From contig OZ025700.1 in assembly GCA_964019335.1 (NCBI GenBank), forward strand, positions 459,046-523,045: DNA of 64,000 bases, in the 5' to 3' direction. The notes beneath the pieces were generated by a model. The model did not search any database and was not told where the DNA came from. It saw only the letters and a list, made by a program, of their open reading frames with translations. This document shows positions 1,592 to 64,000 of this stretch, piece after piece; the stretch's first letter is position 1; each line of letters begins with the position of its first letter. Position numbers and translations under genes: made by a program. This DNA is from Diplonema japonicum. Lineage: Eukaryota > Protista > Euglenozoa: Diplonemea.

Positions 1592-1624
<33 letters not shown>

Positions 1625-6040: not shown

Positions 6041-6086
<46 letters not shown>

Positions 6087-6376: not shown

Positions 6377-6438
<62 letters not shown>

Positions 6439-11517: not shown

Positions 11518-11858
11518 TTTGTGTTGTGTTTTGAAAGGTGTGGAAACTGTGGTGGTGAGTCGTGAGAAGAACATGTGAGTCGACTAAAAAAAGAAAAAAC
11601 GGGCCATTGCGGCACCAAAAGAGACTTGAGAGGAAGGGATAATGTGTGTATGGTAAATACTCGTGGGGGGCTACGAGGGGGGATACAAACAAAGATTATA
11701 CTTTTTGTTGGTTTTTGAAGAGAGGGGCGCCCATGCTTCAATAAAAAAGCTCTACCTCTGTGTTATAGGACCACAGAGGGAGGACGGCTCTCCTGTGCAC
11801 TGTGTGTGGGTGTTGTGTCTTGGTATTGCTAACTTGCTTTCTTCATGTCCCCTTGCCT

Positions 11859-12176
11859 TCAGTAGTAGTACGCCCTGGGGCTCACGACAGTGTCGTAGTA
11901 GCGCGGAGAGGCCAAGGCGTCGTAGTAACGAGGGGAGGTCGCCGAGGTGTAGTAAACATCACGGATGCGCCTCGCAGAAGCATCGGCCTCGGCACGAGCC
12001 GTCGCTGCAGCCACGCTGTATGAGGGGCTGTACGCGGAGCTGTAGTAAGGTGCATAGGCCAAGGAAGAAGTGTAGGGGACGGTGGCACGTGCAACAGCAA
12101 GGTCGGCCTCAGCACGAGCAACAGCAACATCAACAGAGGTCACCCTCGGGGACACAGGTGCGACGTAGTAGACCAT
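11859..12176 (-). CDS. Small Tyr-rich SPRYY-motif protein, copy 3 (105 aa variant, different 3' flank)
   Basis: In-frame 12-nt shorter variant; same protein as 37216-37533. Confidence 0.8.
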   Translation of the reverse strand: MVYYVAPVSPRVTSVDVAVARAEADLAVARATVPYTSSLAYAPYYSSAYSPSYSVAAATARAEADASARRIRDVYYTSATSPRYYDALASPRYYDTVVSPRAYYY

Positions 12177-12542
12177 TTTTATTTTTGAGTTTTTTGAAAT
12201 GTAAGTGTGGAAAGCTGTAGGTGTTCTAACATCAAGGAATTGTGGGAAAGAATAATAACGGAACACCCCCTCGGGTGGGCAGAGGGGTGTAGAGTCGGTA
12301 CAAACAAACAAAGTTGCAACGATAAGGAAGTCCTCCTAGCTAAAGGAGCGCCCCCTACCGTCGCTGTGTCATGTGGTGTGGGGGGAGGGTGTCGAATTGT
12401 TTAAAGGGTGCTACTTTGCACCTGTTTCTTTTTCATCTTTTTTTTATTGTATCTTCTTGGTTCGCATGTTTGGCTTAACACAACCACACCCTGTTATAAG
12501 GTGTTCAGGAAGTGGTTGTCTGTGAAACTATCCCCCTTGCCT

Positions 12543-12872
12543 TCAGTAGTAGTACGCCCTGGGGCTCACGACAGTGTCGTAGTAGCGCGGAGAGGCCAAG
12601 GCGTCGTAGTAACGAGGGGAGGTCGCCGAGGTGTAGTAAGCATCACGGATGCGCCTCGCAGAGGCATCGGCCTCCACACGAGCCGTCGCTGCAGCCACAT
12701 CAGCAGCCACACTGTAGGTGGTGCTGTAGGCAGAGCTGTAGTAAGGTGCATAGGCCAAGGAAGAGGTGTAGGGGACGGTGGCACGTGCAACAGCAAGGTC
12801 GGCCTCAGCACGAGCAACAGCAACATCAACAGAGGTCACCCTCGGGGACACAGGTGCGACGTAGTAGACCAT
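12543..12872 (-). CDS. Small Tyr-rich SPRYY-motif protein, copy 4
   Basis: Same protein as copy 1. Confidence 0.8.
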   Translation of the reverse strand: MVYYVAPVSPRVTSVDVAVARAEADLAVARATVPYTSSLAYAPYYSSAYSTTYSVAADVAAATARVEADASARRIRDAYYTSATSPRYYDALASPRYYDTVVSPRAYYY

Positions 12873-33424: not shown

Positions 33425-34069
33425 TTACTCCAGAAAGGAGTACCACATGCCAAGAGGCAAGATGGTATGGTTAATAGTGTTTTTAGTAGTAACAAAGATA
33501 GAGGCGGATGGATCATTGGGAGATAGATGGTAGGTTAGTGTACAAACGGGCAAGGGCTGTTGTTTGAGCTGCTCAGCTGTTTGGAGGGAGAGCGGAGCGG
33601 GGGGCGGGGTGCTGATGTAGAACTGAGCGTCAACGGCGGCGTAGAAGGTGTCGTAGTCTTCGACTTCAATGTAGACATCGAACTCTATCATGTTGAGGAA
33701 CAACCTCTCCAGCTCGTTGAACTGCTTGAGGTCGACGCCCCCCGCCTGTGCGTAGTAACTGTTTGCGTAGTAGAAGTCGCTCCTCGTCTTCACCGACACC
33801 ACCAACGCGACCAGGAACATCCGGTGGAAGCTCGTCTTGCTCAGCCTGCACTCCGGGTACCTATACACCAACCTGTCCAACAGCATCACAGCCATCACCA
33901 CGTCCTCCTCCTGCGTCGCACAGTACTTCAACAACCTCAACGTGTACTCCCTCACCGTAATCGCCGCGTTCCCCTCAAACGGGTTCTGCACATTCCCCTC
34001 CACCCCCTCGCTGTACATCTCCATCATCGCCACCATGCCCTTCGCGAAGCGCGGACACACAGCCATCAT
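33425..34069 (-). CDS. PHO80/U-type cyclin, copy 2
   Basis: Nearly nucleotide-identical to copy 1 from VCPRF to LKQQ; different N- and C-termini. 3' end uncertain. Confidence 0.8.
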   Translation of the reverse strand: MMAVCPRFAKGMVAMMEMYSEGVEGNVQNPFEGNAAITVREYTLRLLKYCATQEEDVVMAVMLLDRLVYRYPECRLSKTSFHRMFLVALVVSVKTRSDFYYANSYYAQAGGVDLKQFNELERLFLNMIEFDVYIEVEDYDTFYAAVDAQFYISTPPPAPLSLQTAEQLKQQPLPVCTLTYHLSPNDPSASIFVTTKNTINHTILPLGMWYSFLE

Positions 34070-36914: not shown

Positions 36915-37215
36915 ATGAGCACTCTTGTTATATATATGAGACAGCAGTGGTGACAACGAAAGAAAAAGAAAAAAAGAGCGACTTGAGAGGAAGGGATAAT
37001 GTGTGTATGGTAAATACTCGTGGGGGGCTACGAGGGGGGATACAAACAAAGATTATACTTTTTGTTGGTTTTTGAAGAGAGGGGCGCCCATGCTTCAATA
37101 AAAAAGCTCTACCTCTGTGTTATAGGACCACAGAGGGAGGACGGCTCTCCTGTGCACTGTGTGTGGGTGTTGTGTCTTGGTATTGCTAACTTGCTTTCTT
37201 CATGTCCCCTTGCCT

Positions 37216-37533
37216 TCAGTAGTAGTACGCCCTGGGGCTCACGACAGTGTCGTAGTAGCGCGGAGAGGCCAAGGCGTCGTAGTAACGAGGGGAGGTCGCC
37301 GAGGTGTAGTAAACATCACGGATGCGCCTCGCAGAAGCATCGGCCTCGGCACGAGCCGTCGCTGCAGCCACGCTGTATGAGGGGCTGTACGCGGAGCTGT
37401 AGTAAGGTGCATAGGCCAAGGAAGAAGTGTAGGGGACGGTGGCACGTGCAACAGCAAGGTCGGCCTCAGCACGAGCAACAGCAACATCAACAGAGGTCAC
37501 CCTCGGGGACACAGGTGCGACGTAGTAGACCAT
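37216..37533 (-). CDS. Small Tyr-rich SPRYY-motif protein, copy 5
   Basis: Matches copy 3, including ~235 bp of 3' flank (~36980-37215 vs ~11622-11858). Confidence 0.8.
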   Translation of the reverse strand: MVYYVAPVSPRVTSVDVAVARAEADLAVARATVPYTSSLAYAPYYSSAYSPSYSVAAATARAEADASARRIRDVYYTSATSPRYYDALASPRYYDTVVSPRAYYY

Positions 37534-38269
37534 TTTTTTTAAAGGTTTTTTTAACTTGTGGAATAGAAAGCTGTGATGGGTGTGCTGAAACCGTGTCATT
37601 TAGCGAGGGGACGATGGTGGGAACCCCGGACGGACAAGGGAAGTCGGTGGAGGTCCAAAAGTTTTTTTTTTTTTAAAAAGGGGGACTTGAGAAAATAAAT
37701 AAAAAGGGGGACTTGAGAATGTTTTTTTTTTTCTTCAAAAGACACACAAGATAAACCTTAAGAGAAAATAAAAATATTCCAAAACAGACAATCAAGTTCC
37801 AACCTGGGAGGAAGGCATGGGTTTCTCTTTTTCTTTATGGGAGGGAGAGGGGAAGAAGAAGAGGCAACTCCAAATGATAAAAATTCAAAAATAAAAATTT
37901 CAAAAAAGTCTTAAAAATAAAAAGTTGTGACACAACAAGTCCACCGATGAAAAATGAAACCCGAGAGGAAGGAGTGGGTCTCTTCTTTTCTTTTTTTTTT
38001 GGGAGGGGAAGGGAAGGAGAAGAAGAGGCAAATTCTAAAACATACTAGGGAGGAATGAGTGGGGCAGGGGGGTAAAATTTAGGAGGGGGAAAGAGGGAGA
38101 AATCAAAAAAGGGGAAAGGGGCAGAGTGACCAATGTCCATGCGAAAAAGCATAGAGCGGGGGAAGAAGAAAATCAAAAACAGGAAAAACACATCACCACA
38201 TAAGAAAAAAGAAAAAAAAAAAAAACGTCGACCGAGATGGTTCCACTCCAAAAAGAAAAAGAAAAAGAA

Positions 38270-38278
38270 AAACAGAAG

Positions 38279-38310
<32 letters not shown>

Positions 38311-38430
38311 AAAAACAAAAAGAAAAAAAAAAAAAAAAGGAAAAAAAAAAAATCTAAGTGGTTCTATCTAGCCTGGCCGTTGTAGCACCTGTTCCCTATT
38401 CTTTTATTTTTCCCTTTTTTTTTTTCTCAG

Positions 38431-38461
<31 letters not shown>

Positions 38462-41400
38462 ATCTTCCTATGGCGGGGGGGGACCAGCCCCCCACACCCC
38501 TGCTGGCCTATCTGGCCAGCGAGCCTTTGGACCTCTTCTTGTGGGGTATGGGCCCCACCCGCGCCCTCCCCGACTCGAGCTGCAGCCAAGCCACCGCACT
38601 GTTCACCGGGGCCCAGTTCTCCTTGTTGCGCACCTTGACCATGTCCCGCACCAGGTCGTCGCTCCCCAGCTCTTCCATCAACCTGTGCTCCGCCAAGAAC
38701 TTGAACTGGGGCCCGGTCATCCCCTTGAGCTCACCCCTGCATATGTTGGCTTCGACCACGGTGCCATCCGCCCCCGTACCCTTCAGATAGATGTAGCCAC
38801 CCTCCACACAATCCGAGTCAGTACTGGCCGATCGGGCCCGGGCCCGCTTCTTGTCCTTCTTGCTCCACTTCAGCTCTTCCAGGGTGGGGAGGTCCGTGGC
38901 AACCACCTCAGGCCGCCTCTCCCTGTCTTCCTCCTTCTTCCGGGCCAACAGCCCAAGGTACCTCTCAAAGGAGACGTCCTCGAACAACCCCGGGACCGTC
39001 ACCACCGCTGACTGCAGGTCGACCTCTTCAACACCCATCTTCCGCAGATGGTCCTGGACAGTGCGCCTCGTCTCCTTCTCGCAGGGCCCCCTCCCCTCGT
39101 AGACGTCGAGGGTGACCTTCCTTCCATCCCTCACCCACGCCTTCACTTTGATCAGGTCCTTGACCTTTCCCACTGGGGCCCTTATCCTTGCGTCGCACCT
39201 CTCCAAGAACTCACGTAGTGTCACCTTGGTAGCGCCGGCTCCCGCCGCAATGTCCACTACCCCTTCCTTCCCCGGTGTCGGGTGGTGTCTGCACCCCCGG
39301 GTCTGCAACTTGACCACCCTCCATGCCGTTTCCAGAGTCCCCTTGAGCACGCCACCCTTGAAACGAACAGGTTGCACCGCCGAACACCCACATGCGTACG
39401 TGATCTGGAAATCCTGGACCGTCCTCGGGAACTCGAACTCGCGGTATGTTTCCGACTTCTGCACCTCACAACCCACAATGCGGCTGCGGCGCTCTCCGTC
39501 CGACCCACCCTCCAAGCTTGCGAAGTACTGCTTTACCATCATGTATCCAAGTCCAGCAATACCAATCTGGCCAGCCATAGCCACCTCCAGCGGAACACCC
39601 AGCGACTCGGCCTTCGCAAGAAGCATCTCCTCAGTCCTCTCCCTTCCAGGGTCCGTTCCTTCTTCAAGGATGATCTCCACCCGGCCCTCGAACTGGATGA
39701 TGAACTTGAGCAGTCGGTCCCCCGGCCTCGCCCTCAGTGGCACCATCGCTCTCGGAATTGGGATGCCCATCACCACATCAATCGGGTCAAGCTGAACGAA
39801 GTCTCCCCCTACTTCCACCTGCTGTTCCCTTTCCGGTGCCCCGACTCCCATCAGCTGATCTCCCTCCGGCGTCTGGATCCCACCCCTAGGTGTGTCAGGC
39901 CCCGACTGGCTGCCTCCGCTCGGTGCGTTCCCGCCCTCTTTGGTCCCTTCGGGGGCATCATCCGCCTGTGGCTTCAGAGTCCTCCCACCGCCCTGTCTCT
40001 TCGCAGCTTGTTCCCTACAGAACTCGCTCACGGTCATCTTCCTCGTAGCAGTTGTCGCACTCTGGTCCCCCTTGTTCGAGTCCCTCTGGGCCTCCGTATC
40101 CCCCTTAGGACACTGGTCCAAGGTCCGGTTCACCGCAGCGTCAGTCGCCCCTTGTCTCTTCCCATCTTCCTGGGCCTTCGGGTCAAGCTCCCCTCCCTGC
40201 CCAGCCCTCTCGCTGGATCCTGTTCCGGCCATCTCCGTGTCTTCTCCTCCCGGTGAGGCTGCTTCGAGTCCTGCTCCCGCTTTCCCTTGTGTTCCACCCT
40301 CCACCGGTTCCGCCTTTCGCTGCTGCTGCATTCGGGCGTCCAGGTCCTTCTTCGTCTGCTCCAGAAGGGCATCCAGCTGGTGGGCCACCGTGATTGGGGG
40401 TCCGCCTCCCTGTCCCTTCACTTCCCTCTCGGACGACTCCTCAGCTTCGGTGGTTTTTTCATTGCCGAAGGAGTCCTCTGTGAGGTCAGTGTTGGATTCA
40501 GTGTTGGGTTCGTTGTTCGCTTCCTCGTTGTCCTTTTTTTCCTCTTCGCCGTCCAGTACCGGGGGCCCGGGATCCAACTGTACAGGCCCTTTGACTAACA
40601 GCGCCCCTGCTATCGATCTCATCATGGCCGTTGACACCTCTTGGACCACACGCCTGTGTATCGAGACTCTGTCCCCGTGGGCCCGCACAGCTATGCTCCT
40701 GGACAGTTTCTTCGTGAGGTAGACCGCTGCCTCCCTGAACCCCCCGAAGGTCTCCATCGCGAAAGGTACAAAGGCCACGCGTGTCTTGGCGAGCTCCGCC
40801 TCATACTTCTGGCGCTTGTAGTGTTCCGCCTTCGCCGCTGCATACCCCGCAGTCTTCGCCGCCTGGTTGACACAAGACTCGTTCCTCGGGTGGACGATGA
40901 CCACGTCCATAGCCATTGGGCGGGAACCCCCCACCCCACCTGGGAAGAACACGTCCGCCGGGCGCTGGGACGACCCCGGGATCAGCCCCGTCTTCTCCAT
41001 CGTTGCGCTCACCCCGGCCCACTGACAGTGTCTGTGGATGGTCTCCTTCACCCGGTCGTGCCTCGCAATCCTGGCGTTGCCGCATCCCTGGGCATGGTCA
41101 CCCCATACGTCCATCCCCTCAGTCTTGCACCTCGGGTCGTGGCAGCTCTCACCCTGCTTGTAGACCGGAGCCCCCAACCACCACTTGATCAGAGCCCCAA
41201 ACTCGTTGTCCGACAGCTGGTTGTAGAAGTCAGGCGTCGCCGTCAACCACGCCCCCGCATAGTGCATTGACTCCGACATCAACCTCGCTCTCGAGCGCGC
41301 ATCTGCTTTCGCCAAGAGGTCCTCCAGCGCCTTCTCATCAAGCACCCTAGAGAGCCACCTCTGGCTGCAGATGTGGGGGGCCTTGGCCACCATGTCGGGT

Positions 41401-42892
41401 GTAATCTGCATGCCGCCTTTCGTCCTGTTGAACCACTCGAGCCAGCTCCCCCATACACCCCCTTCCAGCCCATGTTCGTATTTGGGATCCAGCTCCTTGC
41501 ACAGCTTCATCGTCGACGCCCTCGAAGCCATGTTGGCCGCGCGCAGGTGCTCCTGGCAGCTCCTCATCCCAAGCCCACCGACTTTTACGGACAGTTTCGC
41601 CTGCTGCCATTCTTTCGACCCGCTCTCGAACTGCATGCCGCACACCTTCGACATCGTCTTCCGCACCATCTCGTCGAACCTGTGCATGACCCCTCCCACA
41701 TGCGAGTCTGGGACCACTCTCATGTAAAACACCAGTTTGCTGTATGAGCTGCAATACCGGAGAAGTGTGTACCCTGTCTGCCTCCCCACCTTGGTCAGCA
41801 TGTCGAAGTTCTCTTCCAGCGCGTCCAAGCGTTTGTTCAGAAAGGCTTGCGTGTACTCTGGCGATCCTATCGGCGCCCCCAGGAGCATGAAGTTCCTCTC
41901 TTTGTGGAAATTCTCTTCTGTCAGGCCATCGAAGCCTGTGTCCTCCACTGTCTGGGGGAGGTCGCCACTAACCCATATGAGCTCACACTTCTGGGGTTTC
42001 ACTTTCAGCCCTATCATTCCACTCAGCTCACACAAGATGTTGTACGCCTTTCTCACTTCATCCACATTCCCCACAAGGACGCCATCGTCCAGGTAGAACT
42101 GGAGGATGTCCAGGTTGCAGTCTTCACTTATCTTGTTCACCAGGGGTTGGATGGCCAGAGAGAACAGCAGTGGTCCCATCGGGTCCCCCTGTTGCACCCC
42201 TTCCTGGGAGGCCTGTGAGCACAGCTGCCTCCAACAAACACTGTTGAAGGCATTGGCGTAGTCGATCTTGAGGATCACCTTGTTTTCCTGCTTGTTGCCC
42301 CGTTCCCTGTCCACATACTGCCTGATGGTGTGTATAGCCGCCTCCATTCCAGCAGGGACCAATACCCCCACCTGGCCGCCTTTCTTCAGGTACGAAGAGG
42401 CCACTTCTGGAGCGATCTTCTTCACAAGGGATTTCCCCACCAGCCGACACAGCACATCCCCAACGGCTATGGGCTGCACGTCCCTGTCGTTCTTCTTGAG
42501 GGCCACAAGGTTCGCCCCTGCCATCAGCAGAGCCACCTCCCTAGGGGCCATGCCTCTAGCTAATGCATTGACTGCCCTCATCACCAACATCAAGCAGCCA
42601 TGTAATTTCCCTTCTCCCACTCCTCCAATCTGGCCTGGACACTCAGCTACGTCTCCTTGTCCCACTTCTTCCCTCCCCTCTTCTTCCACAGGCAGGCTTT
42701 GGGGAGCATCACCACCAGCAGCCAAGCCTCCTCTGTGTTGTCCTTCACCGCCCGGCCCAGAGTGTGCTTAAGGGTAGGCCCCCACAGTCTTTGAAGGCTC
42801 GTCAGGATCGACCCCATGGTCATGACGTTCATGGCGGCTATGGCTTCCAGGCTGGGTAACTCAGTCCTCATCAGGGCCAGTGGGGGGGGTCG
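38270..42892 (-). mobile_element. CRE-like non-LTR retrotransposon, copy A (5'-truncated, internally deleted)
   Basis: RT and REL motifs. Homology to copy C starts at ~42892; the 3' 1.4 kb matches copy B. Lacks segments equal to ~61341-61700 and ~62090-62176. Confidence 0.9.
38508..42725 (-). pseudogene. RT + restriction-like endonuclease + C-terminal extension ORF of copy A
   Basis: KIDYANAFNSV, GVQQGDPMGP, YLDD, CCHC-like knuckle, RHD, RPAD, D-VVIVHP, KRQKY and FVPFAMETFG. A deletion lies inside the RT. Confidence 0.85.
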
Positions 42893-43399
42893 TAAAACAA
42901 AAAAAAAGGTAAGGAATTCCCTGTTCCACCAAGTTCCAGTTCTGCCATTCTGCCAAGTTCTGACTTTCAGTTTGGCAGAAGGGAATGGAACAACCCAATC
43001 CTGCACAAGCAGAATCTTGGTTACCCAGGACCCTGGCTGGGGTTGAGCTGAACACCACACACATTAAGGACACAACACGGAACACAGAAGAAGCTACAAC
43101 TCGGCTGTGGTGTACCCCCTGTAATCAAGTAGTCTTGTGCAGGTCCTTTAACTCATATATCTCTCACCGCGGCCGGGTTGTAGCTTCTTCTGTGTTCCAC
43201 ATTGATCACCACAGCCGGGTTGTATTACATCCAAATACAACATTTCTGGACATATGTACATACCTGCAGCTGCAGTGCACTGGAGTAGATAGGTGCAAAT
43301 GGCTTGATGGAGCTGTGCATGTCTGTGGTATGAAGAAGAAGAAAAAATCATTGTCCAAAAATATTTGAAAAAAAAGTGTTTGCAGGTGTGTCAAAAATT

Positions 43400-52430: not shown

Positions 52431-53146
52431 GGACAAAATCCAACTCACAGCCTTCACGTGGCGTCCCCTGTAAGTAAGCTTCGGCTGAAACTAATGTGAG
52501 AGGTACCCAAACTGTGGTGTGTGTGTGTGTGTGTGCGAACCTTGCCGGGGCTAGATTTAGAGCGGGCCCTGTTACCCATTCGCCCTGTCCTTGGTAAGCC
52601 TTGATGGTCGGAGGGGGTAAGGTAGCTGGTGTGTGCATGGTTCCCCCCTGTGCTGTGTATCCGCTTTCGTTGTGACCGTTGCTGAATACGAAGTAGAAAA
52701 AAAAAAGTAAACAAAACAAAAAAAAGAAAGCAACAACAAAAAAATGAAAAGAGGTTTTTTTTTAATTCAAAGTATCTTTTTGTTTTTGATGTTGGCAGGC
52801 ACTAAAACAACCTTCATACGCTAACCACATCAAAATCAAAATCTATATCTTGGACTAAAAAAAAAACACCCACTCTTCGGAGTTAAGAGAGCTTTTTGTG
52901 CGACTCCCCCTCTTTTTTGGGCAGCACCTATCTATACCTTACCAACGATTCTAAAGCTACAGTTTCTGTACTTTATTGGTCGTTCGTGTTCTGCTGGTGC
53001 CCGCCGCCTCTGCTTGGGTTTGCTGCTGCGTCCGTCGTCCATCGTCGCCGTCGTCCGGGGGGGTTGTTTTGCCCGTCGGCCTGCCCGCTGCTTACCGAAA
53101 GGATCCCCTCCCCCAACACACACTTTAAAAAAAAAAAAAATAAAAA

Positions 53147-54556
53147 ATGGATCCAAGACGGAACGCAAGAGGAGGTGACTGCACAAACCGCAGGGAGAAG
53201 GAACCCCAACAGGCCGCCAGGCTGCACACGACGCCAGGGCCGACCCAACCAGACTATCTGGTTGGGCAGTATGAATCCCCACCCCCACCCCCTAGATCCC
53301 CCCACCCCCCTTTAGAAAAACAAAATAAACTAAAAAAATCACTAGCAGAGACCGCGGTTTTGACCGCCGCTGCTACAGCCACGGCCGCCCCAGCCGCCCT
53401 GAACGCCGCAGCCGACCCTGCCGCCCTGATCGCCGCAACTGAGACCGCCGCAGCCGCCCCTGCCGCAGCCACGACCGCCGCGACCACGACCCCTGCAGCC
53501 GACCCTGCTATTGTTGAAGAGGGAAGAAAAGAGGGAGAAAAAAAGGGGTGGGTACTGGTGTATGGTGAACACCCTCCCGGGTTGAGGATGGGCCCGGCCC
53601 CTGCCTTCCCGAAAGCCCTGCTTTCAGGAAAGTGGGAGGCCCTGTCTGGGAACTCAGGGAGGGAGACCCTCCAATACGGGTACCGGTGGGAGGGGACGAA
53701 CGCCAAGGTGTGCCCCACCACGGGGATCCCAGGGGGGGCGGAGGGGTGGGTGAGGGAGGTGGCCGCCGCCGCAGGGCTCAAGGTGGTCCCCAACCAGGTA
53801 CTTGTCAACAAGTACAAGTCTGGTTGTGGGATTGCCGCCCACAAGGACGACGCAAGGCTGGGACCGATTGTCCTAGTCCTCTCGTATGGAGCCGAGACCA
53901 CAATGGTCATGAGGAGGGGGGATAGGGTGGCGAGATACCTGGTGCCCCCCTTCTCATGGGCATTGTTGGAAGGTGAAGCGAGACACCAGTGGACGCACCA
54001 CATCCCGTCCAGGATGTCCACTGGTGTCAGGGTGTCGATCACCCTGTGTGCGGTAGGCCCCAAGCTCACCTGCACACCCCAGGAAGACCCATCCCCTGGG
54101 TTAACAGACGAACCCCCTTCTTTTTTAGATCCCCTTTTTTGTGGGCAAGGGGGGGTGGCACTCCCGAGAGAGGATAGTGCCCCACCCGCCCCCTTTTTTT
54201 TTTTAGAACCCTCTTCGGAGGAAAACAGACCCTCTTCGGAGGAAAATAGAGAGAAAGGGGAAGAGGTGGCACTCCCGAGAGAGGGTGGTGCTCCTCCCCC
54301 CCATTTGTCCCCCCCTTTTTCATTTTTAGAGCCCTCTCCAGAGGAACCCTCCACGGAGGTAAAAAACAGACCCTCTTCGGAGGAAAACAGAGAGAGAGGG
54401 GAAGAGGTGGCACTCCCGAGAGAGGGTAGTGTTCCTCCCCCCCATTTGTCCCCCCCTTTTTCTTTTATAGAGCCCTCTCCAGAGGGACCCTCCACGGAGG
54501 TGAAAAACAGACCCTCTTCGGAGGAAAAAAGGCAGAGGGAGAGACAGTGTGCCTGA
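53147..54556 (+). CDS. AlkB-family 2OG-Fe(II) dioxygenase ORF1 of copy B (last Arg changed to Cys)
   Basis: NQVLVNKY, HKD, WTHHI and RVSITLC. Confidence 0.75.
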   Translation: MDPRRNARGGDCTNRREKEPQQAARLHTTPGPTQPDYLVGQYESPPPPPRSPHPPLEKQNKLKKSLAETAVLTAAATATAAPAALNAAADPAALIAATETAAAAPAAATTAATTTPAADPAIVEEGRKEGEKKGWVLVYGEHPPGLRMGPAPAFPKALLSGKWEALSGNSGRETLQYGYRWEGTNAKVCPTTGIPGGAEGWVREVAAAAGLKVVPNQVLVNKYKSGCGIAAHKDDARLGPIVLVLSYGAETTMVMRRGDRVARYLVPPFSWALLEGEARHQWTHHIPSRMSTGVRVSITLCAVGPKLTCTPQEDPSPGLTDEPPSFLDPLFCGQGGVALPREDSAPPAPFFFLEPSSEENRPSSEENREKGEEVALPREGGAPPPHLSPPFSFLEPSPEEPSTEVKNRPSSEENRERGEEVALPREGSVPPPHLSPPFSFIEPSPEGPSTEVKNRPSSEEKRQRERQCA

Positions 54557-54833
54557 GAGAAGGTAGTGCTCCTCCCTCTCTGCCCCCCATTTTTTCTGGA
54601 CGCTCTACAGAGGTGTACACCCTGGTCCCCAAGGGCCAGGGGCTTTTTTTGAGAAGGGAAAGAAAAAAAAAAAAACAAACAAGGAGAAACCTTTTTTCTT
54701 TTCAAACAACCAGGGGGACCCAGCACCCGCCCCCGCCGCCTGCCAAGGTGTGGTTGGGGCGGAGGCTGTGAGCGACGTGAGAGCACCACTGCACACCCTT
54801 GTGAGAAGACAGAAAAGAGCCCCCTGGATTGCC

Positions 54834-56366
54834 ATGGGTGGCAGGGAACCTAAGCCAGCGCCCAAGCGGAAGAAGAACAGGAGGAGGCACAGGAGCGAAA
54901 CGGCCCTTCAGAAGAGGACCAAGGCGAGGGAGGGGGCGAGGGAGGCTGCCAGACAGGAGAAGAAAAGGCACCGTCGTGCGAGGAAAGAAGGGAGGAGGAG
55001 GGCCCGCAGAGAGGAACACGAGGCCGCCCTGGAACAGAAGCCAGATGACCCTGCAATGGGGCTGAAGCGGACCGAGGTGGGAACGCCTGGAGCCCAACCC
55101 CTGGCACCCAGAATCCCGGCACCTGGGGCTGCAACCGGTGCAAGGAGGCACCGCAGACGGACGGGACACGGCAAGGAAGGGTTCGAGGGCCGGGTGGAGA
55201 TCATCCTTGAAGAAGGAACGGACCCTGGAAGGGAGAGGACTGAGGAGATGCTTCTTGCGAAGGCCGAGTCGCTGGGTGTTCCGCTGGAGGTGGCTATGGC
55301 TGGCCAGATTGGTATTGCTGGACTTGGATACATGATGGTAAAGCAGTACTTCGCAAGCTTGGAGGGTGGGTCGGACGGAGAGCGCCGCAGCCGCATTGTG
55401 GGTTGTGAGGTGCAGAAGTCGGAAACATACCGCGAGTTCGAGTTCCCGAGGACGGTCCAGGATTTCCAGATCACGTACGCATGTGGGTGTTCGGCGGTGC
55501 AACCTGTTCGTTTCAAGGGTGGCGTGCTCAAGGGGACTCTGGAAACGGCATGGAGGGTGGTCAAGTTGCAGACCCGGGGGTGCAGACACCACCCGACACC
55601 GGGGAAGGAAGGGGTAGTGGACATTGCGGCGGGAGCCGGCGCTACCAAGGTGACACTACGTGAGTTCTTGGAGAGGTGCGACGCAAGGATAAGGGCCCCA
55701 GTGGGAAAGGTCAAGGACCTGATCAAAGTGAAGGCGTGGGTGAGGGATGGAAGGAAGGTCACCCTCGACGTCTACGAGGGGAGGGGGCCCTGCGAGAAGG
55801 AGACGAGGCGCACTGTCCAGGACCATCTGCGGAAGATGGGTGTTGAAGAGGTCGACCTGCAGTCAGCGGTGGTGACGGTCCCGGGGTTGTTCGAGGACGT
55901 CTCCTTTGAGAGGTACCTTGGGCTGTTGGCCCGGAAGAAGGAGGAAGACAGGGAGAGGCGGCCTGAGGTGGTTGCCACGGACCTCCCCACCCTGGAAGAG
56001 CTGAAGTGGAGCAAGAAGGACAAGAAGCGGGCCCGGGCCCGATCGGCCAGTACTGACTCGGATTGTGTGGAGGGTGGCTACATCTATCTGAAGGGTACGG
56101 GGGCGGATGGCACCGTGGTCGAAGCCAACATATGCAGGGGTGAGCTCAAGGGGATGACCGGGCCCCAGTTCAAGTTCTTGGCGGAGCACAGGTTGATGGA
56201 AGAGCTGGGGAGCGACGACCTGGTGCGGGACATGGTCAAGGTGCGCAACAAGGAGAACTGGGCCCCGGTGAACAGTGCGGTGGCTTGGCTGCAGCTCGAG
56301 TCGGGGAGGGCGCGGGTGGGGCCCATACCCCACAAGAAGAGGTCCAAAGGCTCGCTGGCCAGATAG
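54834..56366 (+). CDS. In-frame fusion of the ORF2 basic N-terminus and the C-terminal extension (copy B)
   Basis: ..GHGKEG|FEGRVEII.. is open across the deletion junction. Confidence 0.6.
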   Translation: MGGREPKPAPKRKKNRRRHRSETALQKRTKAREGAREAARQEKKRHRRARKEGRRRARREEHEAALEQKPDDPAMGLKRTEVGTPGAQPLAPRIPAPGAATGARRHRRRTGHGKEGFEGRVEIILEEGTDPGRERTEEMLLAKAESLGVPLEVAMAGQIGIAGLGYMMVKQYFASLEGGSDGERRSRIVGCEVQKSETYREFEFPRTVQDFQITYACGCSAVQPVRFKGGVLKGTLETAWRVVKLQTRGCRHHPTPGKEGVVDIAAGAGATKVTLREFLERCDARIRAPVGKVKDLIKVKAWVRDGRKVTLDVYEGRGPCEKETRRTVQDHLRKMGVEEVDLQSAVVTVPGLFEDVSFERYLGLLARKKEEDRERRPEVVATDLPTLEELKWSKKDKKRARARSASTDSDCVEGGYIYLKGTGADGTVVEANICRGELKGMTGPQFKFLAEHRLMEELGSDDLVRDMVKVRNKENWAPVNSAVAWLQLESGRARVGPIPHKKRSKGSLAR

Positions 56367-56412
56367 GCCAGCAGGGGTGTGGGGGGCTGGTCCCCCCCCG
56401 CCATAGGAAGAT

Positions 56413-56443
<31 letters not shown>

Positions 56444-56563
56444 CTGAGAAAAAAAAAAAGGGAAAAATAAAAGAATAGGGAACAGGTGCTACAACGGCCA
56501 GGCTAGATAGAACCACTTAGATTTTTTTTTTTTCCTTTTTTTTTTTTTTTTCTTTTTGTTTTT

Positions 56564-56595
<32 letters not shown>

Positions 56596-57007
56596 CTTCT
56601 GTTTTTCTTTTTTTTTTTTTGGCAAATAACAATGGACCCACCCGTGCGAAACTAGGGGGAAGAAACTAAAGGGAGGAGGATATCGGGGTGCACGGCGGAG
56701 TGAAGAAGGGACGGGAAAGGCTTTTTTTATTTACTTTCGTTCTTTCTCGTTCACTGGGAACCAAGGAGAGGTAGGGGGGGAAAAAGGTGAAAAGAAGTTC
56801 AAGAAAGTTGGGGGGGGTGGGAGGGCTATCGAAACTTGAGAGGAAGAGATGGAGGAGGGAAAAAGAATTAATTAATTTTTTTTTTTTTTAAAACCTAGAA
56901 CCCATATCAAACAATCTTTTTCATTTTCTTTCTTTTAAACTTTTAAACTAGGAAGATTAAAAATTTTAAGATAGAAAGAAAAATAAGAAAAAGAAACAAC
57001 AAAAAAA

Positions 57008-57039
<32 letters not shown>

Positions 57040-57317
57040 ATTAATTAATTAAAAATAAAACTAAAAATAAAAATAAAACACAATTTAAGACTAAAACTAA
57101 AATTAAAAATAAAAATAAAAATAAGCTCGATGATTTAAAGGAAGCTGGTTGGGGCACCCTTTGACTAAAATAAATAAAAATAAAAGTAAAAATAGAGAGG
57201 GAGAAGAGAAGCAGACAATCAATTGCTTTCTTCTCTTTCTTTTTATCCCTTTTTTTTTTTTTTTTTTTTTTTTTTTCCCTTCCCTAAAGAACGTTTGTTA
57301 AATAAAAAAAATAAAAA

Positions 57318-59024
57318 ATGGATCCAAGACGGAACGCAAGAGGAGGTGACCGCGCAAACCGCAGGGAGAAGGAACCCCGACAGGCCGCCAGGCTGCACAC
57401 GACGCCAGGGCCGACCCAACCAGACTATCTGGTTGGGCAGTATGAATCCCCACCCCCACCCCCTAGATCCCCCCACCCCCCTTTAGAAAAAAAAAATAAA
57501 ATAAAAAAATCACTAGCAGAGACCGCGGTTTTGACCGCCGCTGCTACAGCCACGGCCGCCCCAGCCGCCCTGAACGCCGCAGCCGACCCTGCCGCCCTGA
57601 TCGCCGCAACTGAGACCGCCGCAGCCGCCCCTGCCGCAGCCACGACCGCCGCGACCACGACCCCTGCAGCCGACCCTGCTATTGTTGAAGAGGGAAGAAA
57701 AGAGGGAGAAAAAAAGGGGTGGGTACTGGTGTATGGTGAACACCCTCCCGGGTTGAGGACGGGCCCGGCCCCTGCCTTCCCGAAAGCCCTGCTTTCAGGA
57801 AAGTGGGAGGCCCTGTCTGGGAACTCAGGGAGGGAGACCCTCCAATACGGGTACCGGTGGGAGGGGACGAACGCCAAGGTGCGCCCCACCACGGGGATCC
57901 CAGGGGGGGCGGAGGGGTGGGTGAGGGAGGTGGCCGCCGCCGCAGGGCTCGAGGTGGTCCCCAACCAGGTACTTGTCAACAAGTACAAGTCTGGTTGTGG
58001 GATTGCCGCCCACAAGGACGACGCGAGGCTGGGACCGATTGTCCTAGTCCTCTCGTATGGAGCCGAGACCACAATGGTCATGAGGAGGGGGGACAGGGTG
58101 GCGAAATACCTGGTGCCCCCCTTCTCATGGGCATTGTTGGAAGGTGAAGCGAGACACCAGTGGACGCACCACATCCCGTCCGGGATGTCCACTGGTGTCA
58201 GGGTGTCGATCACCCTGCGTGCGGTAGGCCCCAAGCTCACCCGCACACCCCAGGAAGACCCATCCCCTGGGTTAACAGACGAACCCCCTTTTTTAGATCC
58301 CCTTTTTTGTGGGCAAGGGGGGGTGGCACTCCCAAGAGAGGATAGTGCCCCACCCGCCCCCCTTTTTTTTTTAGAACCCTCTTCGGAGGAAAACAGACCC
58401 TCTTCGGAGGAAAATAGAGAGAAAGGGGAAGAGGTGGCACTCCCGAGAGAGGGTGGTGCTCCTCCCCCCCATTTGTCCCCCCCTTTTTCATTTTTAGAGC
58501 CCTCTCCAGAGGAACCCTCCACGGAGGTAAAAAACAGACCCTCTTCGGAGGAAAACAGAGAGAGAGGGGAAGAGGTGGCACTCCCGAGAGAGGGTAGTGT
58601 TCCTCCCCCCCATTCGTCCCCCCCTTTTTCTTTTATAGAGCCCTCTCCAGAGGGACCCTCCACGGAGGTGAAAAACAGACCCTCTTCGGAGGAAAAAAAG
58701 GCAGAGGGAGAGACAGCACGCCCGAGAGAAGGTAGTGCCCCTCCCTCTCTGCCCCCCATTTTTTCTGGACCCTCTACGGAGGTGTACACCCTGGTCCCCA
58801 AGGGCCGGGGGCTTTTTTTGAGGGTGGAAGGGAAAGAAAAAAAAAACAAACAAGGAGGAACCTTTTTTCTTTTCAAACAACCAGGGGGACCCAGCACCCA
58901 CCCCCACCGCCCGCCAAGGTGTGGTTGGGGCGGAGGCTGCGAGCGACGTGAGAGCACCACTGCACACCCTTGTGAGAAGACAGAAAAGAGCCCCCTGGAT
59001 TGCCATGGGTGGCAGGGAACCTAA
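57318..59024 (+). CDS. AlkB-family 2OG-Fe(II) dioxygenase ORF1 with Ala-rich and Pro/Glu-repeat flanks
   Basis: RETLQYGYRW, PNQVLVNKY, HKD (58011-58019), EARHQWTHHIP and RVSITLR give a complete HxD..H..RxxxxxR set. Confidence 0.85.
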   Translation: MDPRRNARGGDRANRREKEPRQAARLHTTPGPTQPDYLVGQYESPPPPPRSPHPPLEKKNKIKKSLAETAVLTAAATATAAPAALNAAADPAALIAATETAAAAPAAATTAATTTPAADPAIVEEGRKEGEKKGWVLVYGEHPPGLRTGPAPAFPKALLSGKWEALSGNSGRETLQYGYRWEGTNAKVRPTTGIPGGAEGWVREVAAAAGLEVVPNQVLVNKYKSGCGIAAHKDDARLGPIVLVLSYGAETTMVMRRGDRVAKYLVPPFSWALLEGEARHQWTHHIPSGMSTGVRVSITLRAVGPKLTRTPQEDPSPGLTDEPPFLDPLFCGQGGVALPREDSAPPAPLFFLEPSSEENRPSSEENREKGEEVALPREGGAPPPHLSPPFSFLEPSPEEPSTEVKNRPSSEENRERGEEVALPREGSVPPPHSSPPFSFIEPSPEGPSTEVKNRPSSEEKKAEGETARPREGSAPPSLPPIFSGPSTEVYTLVPKGRGLFLRVEGKEKKNKQGGTFFLFKQPGGPSTHPHRPPRCGWGGGCERRESTTAHPCEKTEKSPLDCHGWQGT

Positions 59025-62000
59025 GCCAGCGCCCAAGCGGAAGAAGAACAGGAGGAGGCACAGGAGCGAAGCGGCCCTTCAGAGGCGTCGGGAGAAGAGG
59101 ACCAAGGCGAGGGAGGGGGCGAGGGAGGCTGCCAGACAGGAGAAGAAAAGGCACCGTCGTGCGAGGAAAGAAGGGAGGAGGAGGGCCCGCAGAGAGGAAC
59201 ACGAGGCCGCCCTGGAACAGAAGCCAGATGACCCTGCAATGGGGCTGAAGCGGACCGAGGTGGGAACGCCTGGAGCCCAACCCCTGGCACCCAGAATCCC
59301 GGCACCTGGGGCTGCAACCGGCACAAGGAGGCACCGCAGACGGACGGGACACAGCAAGGAAGGGGTGAGATGGGAGCACCTGGGGGCGTGGGCCTGGGTC
59401 GCCCTGTTCTCCCTCTTGCTGATCCCAGGGGTGAGGCAGGTGCTGGGGGCGGGCATCGGGATGGCCCCCTCCTTCCTGCATGCGGCAGTGTTGTGGAAGA
59501 GGCCGGGGAGCGACAGGAGGACCACCCGCAGGTCAAGGGTACAGGTGGGGCCCCGAGGGGATGAATGGTCCGCCGGGGAGCTCGCTTGGCTAGCGGTAGG
59601 GGGCACTCTGGTGGGAAGCACTTCAGTTTGGATAGGGGGGCTGATGTCGCTCTGGGCCATGGTGGAAGTGATGGTGGGGAAAGCTGGTGCTGGCCCGACC
59701 CAGAGATTCGGACCGGTAAAGCTGAAGAAGACAAGACGCGGATCGAGAGGTCACTACCGGCCGGTGTACTTGGGCCCGCCTAGAAGCTCAAGACGCAGAA
59801 AAAAGAAGGAGGACGCCAAGCAAGCGGCGAAGGAACGAGCTGAGACGGAGGATAAGCTCTTTCAGGCCGAACACCTGGACCCCTTTGCGGACTTGACGCT
59901 GGCAGGGGACGCGTTGCAAGGAGGTGGTGACCCTCCCCCCATGGATTTGGATGATGAGCACATGGAGGCGCAGAAGGAGGGGGAAAAAGAAGGATCAGAC
60001 AAACATCAATGCCGGATGGAAGACTGCTCTTTCCGCACCAGTGTGGCAAGCTGTCTAGTTAAACACCTCAATGCGGTCCACCATCATTTTGTGAAACAAG
60101 AGCAGGCGAGGAGCATGAAGGTGAACCTCTGTGGAACGTGTGCTGCGGCGTGCTCGTCGAACCAGACGCACTGTGCACTACACAGGCAGCGGAATCTGTG
60201 GAACCCCGACAAACAACCCAGGGCCGGCAAGTCAGTGGACGAGATCATGAAGAGCTTCAAGCTGACGAGGAGATCGACGGAGAAGGACGGGAACTGCATG
60301 TTCCACGCCCTGGCCGGTTCGCTCGGGGAAGCCTACGGCGACCACACCCACATCAGGAGCGAGGTTGTAGAATGGATGAAACACCGGGAGGAGCACTATG
60401 CCCCGTTTTGCAGTGAGGGTTGGGACCGGTACTTGGAAGGGATGGGCACAGCAGCGACGTGGGGAGACCACTTGTGCCTGGCAGCCGCAGCACAAGCGTT
60501 TGGCCGCACGATACTCGTGGTTGCTGGGGGGAACAACCCAGTCCTGATGATAGGGGAGTACAACTCCGACCACGAGAAGGTGGTGGTGCTGGCGTACAAC
60601 GGCAACCACTACGAGTATGCAGTCGGAGAGGAGGAGTCGATGATGATGCTCCTTGATGAGTCCCAATCGGTAGCTCTACAAAAGGCAGGTAAGCAACCCT
60701 CCGAGGCCCCGGGTGAGGACATCGGGGAGTGGGACATAATAGACCGTGCGATCCCTGGATACGGGAAGGCAGGGGTGTTGGACCAGATGGGGGCAAGGAA
60801 CCAGCAATTCCTGTACTGTCCGGTGGCGAACTGCGCTAGGTCGAAGTGCAAAAGCACGACCCCGTTCAACTCGACAAGGGTATGGAAGTGTCACCTGGAT
60901 GGGCACCTGGAGAGTGATGAGATCCCGGAGAGCGTTCTGAGGAGACTGGACCTCGAGAGGTGCCTGGTGTGCAGGGGCTGTGTGTGGAAGGGTCAGGGGT
61001 GCCACGACGAGTGCAAAAAGGCGGTGCGAAGGGAAGGGGAATACACGACCCCCCCGCCGGCCCCGACGAGGACCGAGTTACCCAGCCTGGAAGCCATAGC
61101 CGCCATGAACGTCACGACCATGGGGTCGATCCCGACGAGCCTTCAAAGACTGTGGGGGCTTACCCTTAAGCACACTCTGGGCCGAGCGGTGAAGGACAAC
61201 ACAGAGGAGGCTTGGCTGCTGGTGGCGATGCTCCCCAAAGCCTGCCTGTGGAAGAAGAGGGGAGGGAAGAAGCGGGACAAGGAGACGGAGCTGAGTGTCC
61301 AGGCCAGATTGGAGGAGTGGGAGAAGGGAAATTACATGGCCCTCTGGAATAAGCTGGAATCAGGTGAGAAGGGGGAACCTAAGAACGACGAGGTCTCTAA
61401 GGTCGCCAGGGCCACGGAACTGTGCAGCAAAGGGAGGTTCTCGGCAGGAAACGCGGCGCTTGTAGCCCAGGGGCTGGCGGAAGACAATGAGGATTGCTGG
61501 AGAGCGCTGCAGAGCAAACATCCAGAGCCACTACACCCCCAATGGGGCAACCCGGCGAAGACGAAGGAAGCGGTAGAAGTCTTGCCAGAAGAAGTGCTGG
61601 ACGCAATCAGGGGCTTCCCGAGGGGGACTGCTGCGGGACCGACTGGTCTGAGAGCCCAGCACATCAAGGACGCGGTGGACGGAGCTTTTGAGTCTCAAGG
61701 CTGTTTGATGTCGGTGACGAGGGCAGTCAACGCATTAGCTAGAGGCACGGCCCCTAGGGAGGTGGCTCCGCTGATGGCAGGGGCGAACCTTGTGGCCCTC
61801 AAGAAGAACGACAGGGACGTGCGGCCCATAGCCGTTGGGGATGTGCTGCGTCGGCTGGTGGGGAAATCCCTTGTGAAGAAGATCGCTCCGGAAGTGGCCT
61901 CTTCGTACCTGAAGAAAGGCGGCCAGGTGGGGGTATCGGTCCCTGCTGGAATGGAGGCGGCTATACACACCATCAGGCAGTATGTGGACAGGGAACGGGG

Positions 62001-63764
62001 CAACAAGCAGGAAAACAAGGTGATCCTCAAGATCGGCTACGCCAACGCCTTCAACAGTGTTTGTCGGAGGCAGCTGTGCTCACAGGCCTATGAGCAAGCG
62101 TCGGGGCTGTATGCGTGGGCCGATTGGTGCTACAGGGTGCCCTCCCAATTATACTACAACGGAAAGGTGATTAAGTCCCAGGAAGGGGTGCAACAGGGGG
62201 ACCCGATGGGACCGCTGCTGTTCTCTCTGGCCATCCAACCCCTGGTGAACAAGATAAGTGAAGACTGCAACCTGGACATCCTCCAGTTCTACCTGGACGA
62301 TGGCGTCCTTGTGGGGAATGTGGATGAAGTGAGAAAGGCGTACAACATCTTGTGTGAGCTGAGCGGAATGATAGGGCTGAAAGTGAAACCCCAGAAGTGC
62401 GAGCTCATATGGGTTAGTGGCGACCTCCCCCAGACAGTGGAGGACACAGGCTTCGATGGCCTGACAGAAGAGAATTTCCACAAAGAGAGGAACTTCATGC
62501 TCCTGGGGGCGCCGATAGGATCGCCGGAGTACACGCAAGCCTTTCTGAACAAACGCTTGGACGCGCTGGAAGAGAACTTCGACATGCTGACCAAGGTGGG
62601 GGGGCAGACAGGGTACACACTTCTCCGGTATTGCAGCTCATACAGCAAACTGGTGTTTTACATGAGGGTGGTCCCAGACTCGCATGTGGGAGGGGTCATG
62701 CACAGGTTCGACGAGATGGTGCGGAAGACGATGTCGAAGGTGTGCGGCATGCAGTTCGAGAACGGGTCGAAAGAATGGCAGCAGGCGAAACTGTCCGTAA
62801 AAGTCGGTGGGCTTGGGATGAGGAGCTGCCAGGAGCACCTGCGCGCGGCCAACATGGCTTCGAGGGCGTCGACGATGAAGCTGTGCAAGGAGCTGGATCC
62901 CAAATACGAACATGGGCTGGAAGGGGGTGTATGGGGGAGCTGGCTCGAGTGGTTCAACAGGACGAAGGGCGGCATGCAGATTACACCCGACATGGTGGCC
63001 AAGGCCCCCCACATCTGCAGCCAGAGGTGGCTCTCTAGGGTGCTTGATGAGAAGGCGCTGGAGGACCTCTTGGCGAAAGCAGATGCACGCTCGAGAGCGA
63101 GGTTGATGTCGGAGTCAATGCACTATGCGGGAGCGTGGTTGACGGCGACGCCTGACTTCTACAACCAGCTGTCGGACAACGAGTTTGGGGCTCTGATCAA
63201 GTGGTGGTTGGGGGCTCCGGTCTACAAGCAGGGTGAGAGCTGCCACGACCCGAGGTGCAAGACTGAGGGGATGGACGTATGGGGTGACCATGCCCAGGGA
63301 TGCGGCAACGCCAGGATTGCGAGGCACGGCCGGGTGAAGGAGACCATCCACAGACACTGTCAGTGGGCCGGGGTGAGCGCAACGATGGAGAAGACGGGGC
63401 TGATCCCGGGGTCGTCCCAGCGCCCGGCGGACGTGTTCTTCCCAGGTGGGGTGGGGGGTTCCCGCCCAATGGCTATGGACGTGGTCATCGTGCACCCGAG
63501 GAACGAGTCTTGTGTCAACCAGGCGGCGAAGACTGCGGGATACGCAGCGGCGAAGGCGGAACACTACAAGCGCCAGAAGTATGAGGCGGAGCTCGCCAAG
63601 ACACGCGTGGCCTTTGTACCTTTCGCGATGGAGACCTTTGGGGGGTTCGGGGAGGCAGCAGTCTACCTCACGAAGAAACTGTCCAGGAGCATAGCTGCGC
63701 GGGCTCACGGGGACAGAGTCTCGATACACAGGCGTGTGGTCCAAGAGGTGTCAACGGCCATGAT
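59005..63764 (+). CDS. ORF2 polyprotein: basic region, two hydrophobic segments, C2H2 fingers, OTU protease, RT, REL endonuclease
   Basis: Manually translated frame opening at 58822, apparently absent from the ORF track because no stop occurs before the window end. Motifs: CRMEDC..HLNAVH; DGNCMFHAL (60286), WGDHLCL, NHY (~60604); CPVANC..HLDGH; AAGPTGLR; RPIAVG; QGDP; YLDD; RPAD; KRQKY. RT motif A reads KIGY here. Confidence 0.88.
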
Positions 63765-64000
63765 CCCGCAAACCCGCAAACCCGCAAACCCGCAAACCCG
63801 CAAACCCGCAAACCCGCAAACCCGCAAACCCGCAAACCCGCAAACCCGCAAACCCGCAAACCCGCAAACCCGCAAACCCGCAAACCCGCAAACCCGCAAA
63901 CCCGCAAACCCGCAAACCCGCAAACCCGCAACCCGCAAACCCGCAAACCCGCAAACCCGCAAACCCGCAAACCCGCAAACCCGCAAACCCGCAAACCCGG
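63765..64000. repeat. (CCCGCAAA)n array, ~29 units
   Basis: Nearly perfect 8-mer array with one 7-nt unit; the window ends in cccgg. Confidence 0.95.

Follow-up and report, generated by a model that had tools for sequence, protein, structure and literature searches.

The window analysed here is a 64,000-nt stretch of the genome of the diplonemid Diplonema japonicum (contig OZ025700.1, positions 459,046 to 523,045 of the forward strand; G000:C53:459046-523045) whose final base is the end of contig C53, and its positions 57300–63764 are the end copy, truncated at both ends, of a ~9.6-kb retrotransposon without long terminal repeats (a non-LTR element) carrying an AlkB domain and an OTU domain in addition to its reverse transcriptase (RT). 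This plus-strand copy, named C, was recovered by self-BLAST, is the outermost element copy at the chromosome end and aligned at 99.6% identity to L003 (contig C75; reference positions 115–6581), a natural full-length copy that was used as the alignment reference. Its 5′ side is truncated, with some 190 nt of the 5′ untranslated region (UTR) and the whole of the spliced leader missing, and its 3′ side breaks off at 63764, interrupted by the terminal repeat (CCCGCAAA)n, which occupies 63765–64000 on the plus strand and runs to the end of the contig and thus of the window. The initial annotation of this DNA had described three element copies, A, B and C, and self-BLAST recovered the same set, but the full length that it had put at ~8.8 kb comes to about 9.6 kb when measured from the spliced leader as far as the poly(A). 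The genome searched comprised 62.5 Mb in 132 contigs, and all protein analyses were performed on natural copies, with no consensus built and no frame mended.

The first open reading frame (ORF) of copy C, ORF1 (57318–59024, plus strand; an ATG ORF of 568 aa plus stop in a standard-code scan), corresponds to the N-terminal part of a polyprotein in intact copies and contains an AlkB-type Fe(II)/2-oxoglutarate dioxygenase domain at 57819–58220, matched by PF13532 (2OG-FeII_Oxy_2) with an E-value of 6.3e-14 and a score of 53 bits against a cut-off of 31. A motif scan located VNKY at 57975–57986, HKD at 58011–58019, WTHH at 58161–58172 and RVSITLR at 58200–58220, and in a 60-sequence alignment the iron triad (H, D, H) and both arginines (R, R) are invariant. 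An AlphaFold2 model of the domain (pLDDT 92.8) is predicted to adopt the double-stranded β-helix fold of solved AlkB homologues, with Foldseek placing ALKBH6 first (1e-11), followed by ALKBH8, NMAD-1, ALKBH5, ALKBH2/3 and Escherichia coli AlkB, and the best sequence match in the PDB was ALKBH8 (1.3e-8). A word-indexed homologue search with the AlkB region gave no match, and exhaustive HMMER comparison with 1.84 billion representative proteins returned a best relative only 35% identical, the relatives being mostly stand-alone proteins of 170–200 aa. Among the domain's closest relatives by sequence are fusion proteins that join AlkB to an mRNA cap or RNA methyltransferase; P0184, P0189 and P0172 are such fusions, and their partners are an FtsJ 2′-O-methyltransferase, a guanine-N7 methyltransferase of the mRNA cap and a methyltransferase of class I. 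Within the D. japonicum genome itself, a protein search found four weak internal matches to host AlkB-like loci at 26–36% identity, which, together with the ceiling of 35% among the representative proteins, argues that the AlkB domain was not recently captured from a host gene.

The second frame of copy C, ORF2 (58822–63764, plus strand; first ATG at 59005), remains open on into the terminal repeat as far as the window end (63999). It carries an OTU cysteine-protease/deubiquitinase domain at 60286–60612 (plus strand; PF02338, 3.1e-12, 47.5 bits against a cut-off of 23.3) with the motifs DGNC at 60286–60297, WGDH at 60460–60471 and NGNHY at 60598–60612, and a sequence search of the PDB matched it to OTUD5 and OTUD3 at 1e-4. 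C2H2-like zinc fingers were found on either side of this domain by motif scan, at 60010–60084 and 60832–60906 on the plus strand, and the RT follows at 61801–62412 (plus strand; RVT_1, 1.6e-14; YLDD at 62290–62301), with RVT_1 E-values ranging from 1.6e-14 to 2e-16 in the copies scanned. Downstream of the RT, a CCHC finger and a restriction-like endonuclease (RLE) of PD-(D/E)xK type are indicated at 63241–63576 (plus strand) by the motif series C-x4-C..H-x3-C, RHD, E, RPADV and MDVV..K, an assignment made at motif level and accompanied by no profile or structure match. The RHD of copy A and other copies is replaced by RHG in copy C. The domain content proposed in the initial annotation, namely an intact AlkB motif set in ORF1 and OTU, zinc fingers, RT and endonuclease in ORF2, was thus borne out, with Pfam matching the three domains for which profile scans had been suggested (2OG-FeII_Oxy_2, OTU and RVT_1) and the fingers and the CCHC/RLE block recognised by motif only.

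The best PDB sequence matches of the RT were R2 proteins (3e-7), with LINE-1 ORF2p at 0.044, and Pfam at E ≤ 1 detected no Exo_endo_phos (apurinic/apyrimidinic endonuclease, APE) or RNase H domain in the element proteins. Because the RT lies nearest to R2 proteins, a CCHC/PD-(D/E)xK-like block sits 3′ of it and APE and RNase H are lacking, the element is classed from its sequence as an RLE-type non-LTR retrotransposon, or long interspersed nuclear element (LINE), of the R2/CRE supergroup. The copies bear hallmarks of target-primed reverse transcription, with a poly(A) of 2–50 nt after a constant 3′ end and 5′ truncation at variable points. Relatives at 31–41% identity were found in other eukaryote assemblies and in Diplonema papillatum, whose matches are hypothetical proteins that share 41% identity along one third of the query; OTU is present in three of four relatives examined (two of them from one cluster), but there it lies C-terminal of the RT.

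In copy C an A10 homopolymer (58837–58846, plus strand) leaves the RT in a different reading frame from AlkB. A comparison of copies showed that the tract elsewhere measures A11 to A13, most commonly A12, and with A12 the AlkB and RT frames fuse into one. The two-ORF architecture given in the initial annotation does not hold for intact copies, which have a single ORF, and the split is specific to copies with a frameshifted tract; the A-tract between AlkB and the remainder may toggle one-ORF and two-ORF copies. An insertion of AA at 58836 also appears in contigs of public runs, with almost the full depth behind it in X2 and X8 and roughly one quarter in X4. Public runs from at least three studies contain the element at an identity of 99% or higher, and some of the contigs bridge the ORF1/ORF2 boundary. 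As an example of an intact frame, L013:1359-9998:- (contig C9) is one uninterrupted ORF, 2,880 codons long, in which Pfam places AlkB at residues 242–375, OTU at 1018–1123 and RVT_1 at 1523–1726. A protein search of the genome found the AlkB domain of the main family inside open frames of 2,884, 2,967 and 2,826 residues, as well as within many shorter, broken frames, and the RT frame of L003 is stop-free over 2,352 residues.

The intact element accordingly comprises a 39-nt leader, a ~170-nt 5′ UTR, one frame of about 2,800–2,970 residues, a T-rich 3′ UTR, 26-bp repeats and poly(A), and its polyprotein runs in the order AlkB, low-complexity repeats, C2H2 finger, OTU, fingers, RT, CCHC/RLE and an orphan tail of ~750 aa. 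The low-complexity part is represented in copy C by four imperfect 111-nt (37-aa) tandem repeats rich in Pro, Ser and Glu, located 3′ of AlkB at 58322–58765 (plus strand; self-BLAST and translation); their number varies among copies, and the ratio of nonsynonymous to synonymous substitution rates (dN/dS) is about 0.85–0.96 there. The tail after the endonuclease (minus strand; L003:1310-3565, and 38511 to about 40760 in window copy A) consists of an acidic low-complexity part and an apparently structured part of ~450 aa. It had no Pfam match and no similarity between families, and the protein atlas, which was uninformative for the RT-RLE part, was blank for its C-terminal 453 aa.

In a DNA search of the same genome, the 5′ (AlkB), RT and 3′ blocks each matched at least 40 places, and the AlkB and RT blocks stand at a canonical spacing of about 4.25–4.40 kb in at least 15 natural copies. 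Three element families, with ORF2 identities of 39–42% between the main family and its diverged sisters, all keep AlkB, OTU and RT by Pfam, and in L022 all three lie in one frame. AlkB identity across families is 50–76%: family 2 is 70–72% identical to the main family in this domain and has open frames of 3,005 residues with AlkB, and family 3 is 50–55% identical. The AlkB signature HxD, H, RxSxTxR, the catalytic Cys (DGNC/GGDC) and His ((N/S/E)HY) of OTU and the RLE motif series are conserved in the three families. Between families, dN/dS of the AlkB domain is 0.21–0.35 (Nei-Gojobori), compared with about 0.75–1.0 in the flanking low-complexity parts and in the dead copy B. These results uphold the earlier proposal that AlkB belongs to the element (it is collinear with element sequence in both copies B and C); single frames of 2,826–3,005 residues add to the spacing evidence for its linkage to the RT, and the domain appears to be under selection. 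Given the low dN/dS and the intact catalytic residues in three families, AlkB and, with it, OTU are by the measure of sequence conservation maintained genes of the element, neither neighbours nor passengers.

Full-length copies begin with a 39-nt spliced leader, (N)ACCAACGATTCTAAAGCTACAGTTTCTGTACTTTATTG, of which the first nucleotide is variable and which is identical at 37 of 39 positions to a published euglenozoan leader (PMC3795323). The genome contains the 3′ half of this leader at least 128 times, and what follows it differs widely: likely spliced leader (SL) RNA genes (...GTGTCCGACCGTGCCAATA) and element 5′ UTRs are among the sequences downstream. The pattern suggests that trans-spliced RNAs have been retroposed widely and that SL RNA genes are dispersed. 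The leader is joined to element 5′ UTRs at about seven different positions, and relic leader tandems occur in which a new leader has been spliced to an AG within the old one, a leader-relic signature previously described for dinoflagellate retrogenes (PMC6050394). As read from these sequences, the several UTR positions and the relic tandems show that the transposition intermediate is an mRNA, trans-spliced and polyadenylated, which has been reused in repeated rounds. Apart from the element, the leader 3′ half also precedes other repeated families (e.g. ...GTCGCTCCCCGTGGCTGAT and ...GTGGTGGGGATAACATGGA) and unique sequences. Insertion inside SL RNA genes was considered and rejected, as the 5′ UTR has the leader in front of it in its full 39 nt and the copies lie at contig ends. 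The true 3′ end of the element consists of the 26-bp repeats and then the poly(A), beyond which follows the terminal tract, a few repeat units with the next leader, or a 5′-truncated next copy.

Genome-wide, the terminal octamer reads (CCCGCAAA)n in 5′ to 3′ direction toward contig ends and GGGTTTGC at contig starts, so that the terminal strand ending 3′ is apparently C-rich, the opposite of canonical telomeres, in an assembly built on HiFi reads. No telomere paper came up when the literature was searched for this octamer. The genome holds a single candidate for TERT (G000:C41:533974-534300; PF12009, 28.4 bits) in a 1,086-aa open frame. To relate the element to the ends, we took a census of 20 unbiased contig starts together with coordinate tables. 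The octamer begins 15 of these 20 starts, and 8 of these have the main family bordering directly on the tract, always with the element 3′ side distal and with junctions at different element positions. Within 10 kb of contig starts the 3′ block gave 24 minus-strand and no plus-strand matches; those on the plus strand have high coordinates and, on contigs of known length, fall no more than 10 kb from the end. The family is present at most chromosome ends, and nearly all copies are found at contig ends with the 3′ end outward and the 5′ end proximal, in head-to-tail arrays whose outermost copy is often eroded from the 3′ side and capped by (CCCGCAAA)n, as exemplified by copy C.

Among 12 junctions at the 5′ side, 3 have telomere units immediately upstream of the leader, and repeats flank about 5 of 13 3′ ends, the other junctions being copy-to-copy. 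Distal copies appear younger than proximal ones, because the distal truncated copy in L002 cannot have been split by the proximal one. Two tandem arrays have fixed spacing: G000:C99:344796-358838 contains three RT blocks 6,021 bp apart, and G000:C24:6251-28102 contains three family-2 AlkB blocks 10,659 bp apart. End priming of the HeT-A type was rejected, as the polarity is opposite, with the 3′ end distal and the 3′ side eroded and capped. A family-2 element in L016 (G000:C12:1-10000; 343–6661, plus strand) has the opposite orientation at a chromosome start, where it is 5′-truncated inside OTU and directly follows the terminal tract.

The two other copies in the window are rearranged in different ways. 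Copy B (52940–56618, plus strand, its start at about 52940; self-BLAST) retains its spliced leader (52940–52978, plus) and an ORF1 with two stops (53147–54850, plus) but has an internal deletion, the junction at 55181 joining reference position about 2184 to about 7509, that is, the 5′ 2 kb to the 3′ 1.4 kb. Copy A (about 37662 to 42893, minus strand; self-BLAST) is 5′-truncated and inverted relative to the usual polarity; its ORF at 38511–42767 (minus) encodes the RT, the RLE and the C-terminal part, and its 3′ region shows the T-rich 3′ UTR, the 26-bp repeats and an A13 tail. Elsewhere in the window, a ~630-bp unit forms four tandem repeats at 90–94% identity (10058–12910), with a further 99%-identical copy just past the 3′ end of copy A (36972–37550), and a 505-bp direct repeat at 99.6% identity occurs twice, 26 kb apart (7621–8125 and 33558–34062). 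An Rfam scan of the window gave no match. The neighbouring ORFs are eukaryotic genes, encoding inosine monophosphate dehydrogenase (IMPDH), a calpain, a RabGAP and an acyl-CoA dehydrogenase fusion. The IMPDH is 79% identical to that of D. papillatum, with some other relatives slightly higher, and 72% identical to a transcriptome protein prefixed Hpha, which we read as Hemistasia. A bacterial or viral origin of the region was rejected given the eukaryotic neighbours and the close match of IMPDH to D. papillatum. The genome note for D. japonicum strain YPF1604 reports 62.3 Mb in 118 pseudomolecules from PacBio HiFi and Hi-C data and makes no mention of telomeres or transposons (PMC13598402).

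Taking these observations together, we consider it probable, though far from certain, that the element is a recently active RLE non-LTR family of D. japonicum chromosome ends that moves through a leader-headed mRNA and is served by its AlkB and OTU domains. The RLE would nick the G-rich (TTTGCGGG) strand of the terminal repeat, target-primed reverse transcription would follow, and new copies would enter at or within the repeat, such that arrays grow outward; nick-primed insertion into the G-rich strand would also explain the polarity. AlkB may be an active Fe(II)/2-oxoglutarate dioxygenase that acts in cis on the element's own RNA, removing base methylations that stall the RT, either lesions of the 1-methyladenosine or 3-methylcytidine (m1A/m3C) type or methylated bases near the spliced-leader cap, and OTU may cleave the giant polyprotein, strip ubiquitin-like marks, or both. 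These roles of a demethylase and an OTU protease in the service of the element are inference by analogy, and are preferred because of the viral AlkB domains, the demethylase of an orchid Gypsy element (PMC9289625), the proteases of NeSL/Utopia elements (PMC4640811) and the methyltransferase fusions among the AlkB relatives.

Several observations weigh against this interpretation. Copy C itself is dead, being truncated at both ends, split in its frame and bearing RHG for RHD, and among the public runs holding the element whose contigs were compared, none is on record as RNA. The closest solved relatives of the AlkB domain, ALKBH8 and ALKBH6, are not classical repair demethylases. Several 5′ ends join a poly(A) tail or an eroded copy directly and repeats on both sides are found at some junctions only, so that end-attachment or template switching fits as well as nick-primed insertion, and direct attachment to eroded ends is an alternative route by which elements may arrive. 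The usual polarity has exceptions in window copy A and in family 2 at the left end of C12, and the high identity between ends could come partly from subtelomeric recombination.

This last point leads to a reading that we regard as quite unlikely, in which the element is real but has spread mainly through subtelomeric recombination or break-induced replication of dead arrays rather than by ongoing telomere-targeted retrotransposition. The 97–100% identity of copies at different ends, the many rearranged or internally deleted copies and the fixed spacing of the arrays on C99 (6,021 bp) and C24 (10,659 bp) would all be expected from it, but the junctions vary by end, with poly(A) tails of 2–50 nt, variable 5′ truncation and differing leader joins with relics, and several copies keep intact giant ORFs. 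With comparable doubt we entertain the idea that the elements help to build and heal chromosome ends, eroded termini being extended outward by leader-capped cDNAs in the reverse of the HeT-A/TART polarity. The C-rich strand of the terminal octamer runs 5′ to 3′ to the end, and AlkB would, on this view, strip RT-blocking methylations from the hypermodified leader cap region, or elsewhere on the RNA, to allow full-length copies. Far less probable than either is that AlkB and OTU are host fragments picked up once and carried without function for the element. LINEs do transduce host sequence, and in the window copy AlkB sits in a separate ORF followed by near-neutral low-complexity repeats; such passengers, however, would hardly retain 50–76% identity, a dN/dS of 0.21–0.35 and all catalytic residues while ORF2 has diverged to 39–42% identity, nor lie in-frame within the 2,826–3,005-residue frames of several copies, and neither the host AlkB-like loci (26–36%) nor the best of the 1.84 billion representatives (35%) comes close.

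A different question is on what the two enzymes act. AlkB could work on DNA or chromatin at the insertion site, by way of N6-methyladenine (6mA) or another telomeric mark or by protein hydroxylation, and not on the RNA template, with OTU directed at host repair ubiquitin signalling instead of the polyprotein; we judge this unlikely, yet worth keeping in view. Euglenozoan telomeres are heavily modified with base J, and the NMAD-1/ALKBH4 type, which is linked to 6mA, is among the structural neighbours of the domain, as are ALKBH2/3, which repair DNA. On the other hand, glucosylated hydroxymethyluracil is, to our knowledge, not removable by AlkB chemistry, the domain is matched best, in sequence and in fold, by ALKBH8 and ALKBH6, both linked to RNA, and close relatives occur as fusions with methyltransferases of the mRNA cap and of RNA. 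For OTU, the OTU and Ulp1 domains of DNA transposons have been proposed to act on repair signalling (PMC2836005), but a single ORF of 2,800 residues makes a cis-protease role plausible. The RNA-directed reading remains the one that we prefer.

If this reading is correct, the element would be the first LINE-type element found with a demethylase-type enzyme under selection, and the second retrotransposon class after the orchid Gypsy elements, which points to base methylation of RNA as something that retroelements counter, be it a general obstacle to reverse transcription or a control exerted by the host. Because a close relative, D. papillatum, can be transformed, with gene replacement reported (PMC10161547), the family offers a tractable system for telomere-associated retrotransposition outside animals and fungi. 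The same system suits the study of retrotransposition of trans-spliced mRNA with relic leaders and of an unusual telomere repeat with apparently inverted strand polarity. SLACS-like RTs are mentioned in the D. papillatum genome paper, and so are a dozen AlkB-type genes, with no connection drawn between the two.

Among telomeric elements, HeT-A/TART of Drosophila, GilM/GilT of Giardia and Zepp of Chlorella likewise form head-to-tail LINE arrays at chromosome ends, with terminal copies eroded and capped. In those elements the 3′ end faces the centromere and erosion proceeds from the 5′ side, whereas the diplonemid element has the opposite polarity, possesses an RLE and resides in a genome with a TERT candidate. 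MoTeR has its 5′ side toward the chromosome end. Among RLE LINEs that target repeats, MoTeR1 of Magnaporthe oryzae (Starnes et al. 2012, as cited in PMC4640811) resembles the diplonemid element in its RLE type, its head-to-tail end arrays by telomere repeats and its truncated or internally deleted derivatives; AlkB, OTU, one giant ORF, the leader at the 5′ end, poly(A) and the 3′ end outward are features of the diplonemid element.

The SLACS/CZAR/CRE1-2 elements share with it a euglenozoan host, the zinc finger-RT-CCHC/RLE core and an association with the spliced leader, but they insert within SL RNA genes, while the diplonemid element owns a whole leader acquired by trans-splicing and has telomeric copies. 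We know of no AlkB or OTU in SLACS/CZAR/CRE1-2. The NeSL/Utopia RLE LINEs (PMC4640811) are similar in placing a cysteine protease of the type acting on ubiquitin-like modifiers upstream of the RT in a single ORF; their protease is Ulp1, however, as opposed to an OTU fold accompanied by AlkB, and the elements have different targets. OTU domains are otherwise known from Helitrons and Ginger1 (PMC2836005). In the full-text literature, AlkB was found solely in an LTR element, OTU solely in Helitrons/Ginger1 and Ulp1 in RLE LINEs; no described LINE with AlkB and OTU was found there, as the initial annotation had supposed, Repbase and Dfam being outside that search.

The LTR element in question is an orchid Ty3/Gypsy retrotransposon that encodes an active N6-methyladenosine (m6A) RNA demethylase (PMC9289625), an AlkB-family dioxygenase fixed in a retrotransposon and proposed to act on the element's own RNA. 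It differs from the diplonemid element in being an LTR element of plants with an ALKBH5-like extra ORF, as against a non-LTR element with an ALKBH6/8-like domain inside the RT polyprotein. The replicases of Tymovirales (e.g. Betaflexiviridae) also combine AlkB and an OTU-like protease in one polyprotein beside an RNA-templated polymerase, and viral AlkB repairs methylated RNA. These are RNA viruses with an RNA-dependent RNA polymerase and not an RT, and no sequence relationship was found, the relatives of the element AlkB reaching at most 35% identity. The independent recurrence of the AlkB and OTU pair in the replicases of plant RNA viruses and in a diplonemid LINE suggests convergent solutions of RNA-templated replicators.

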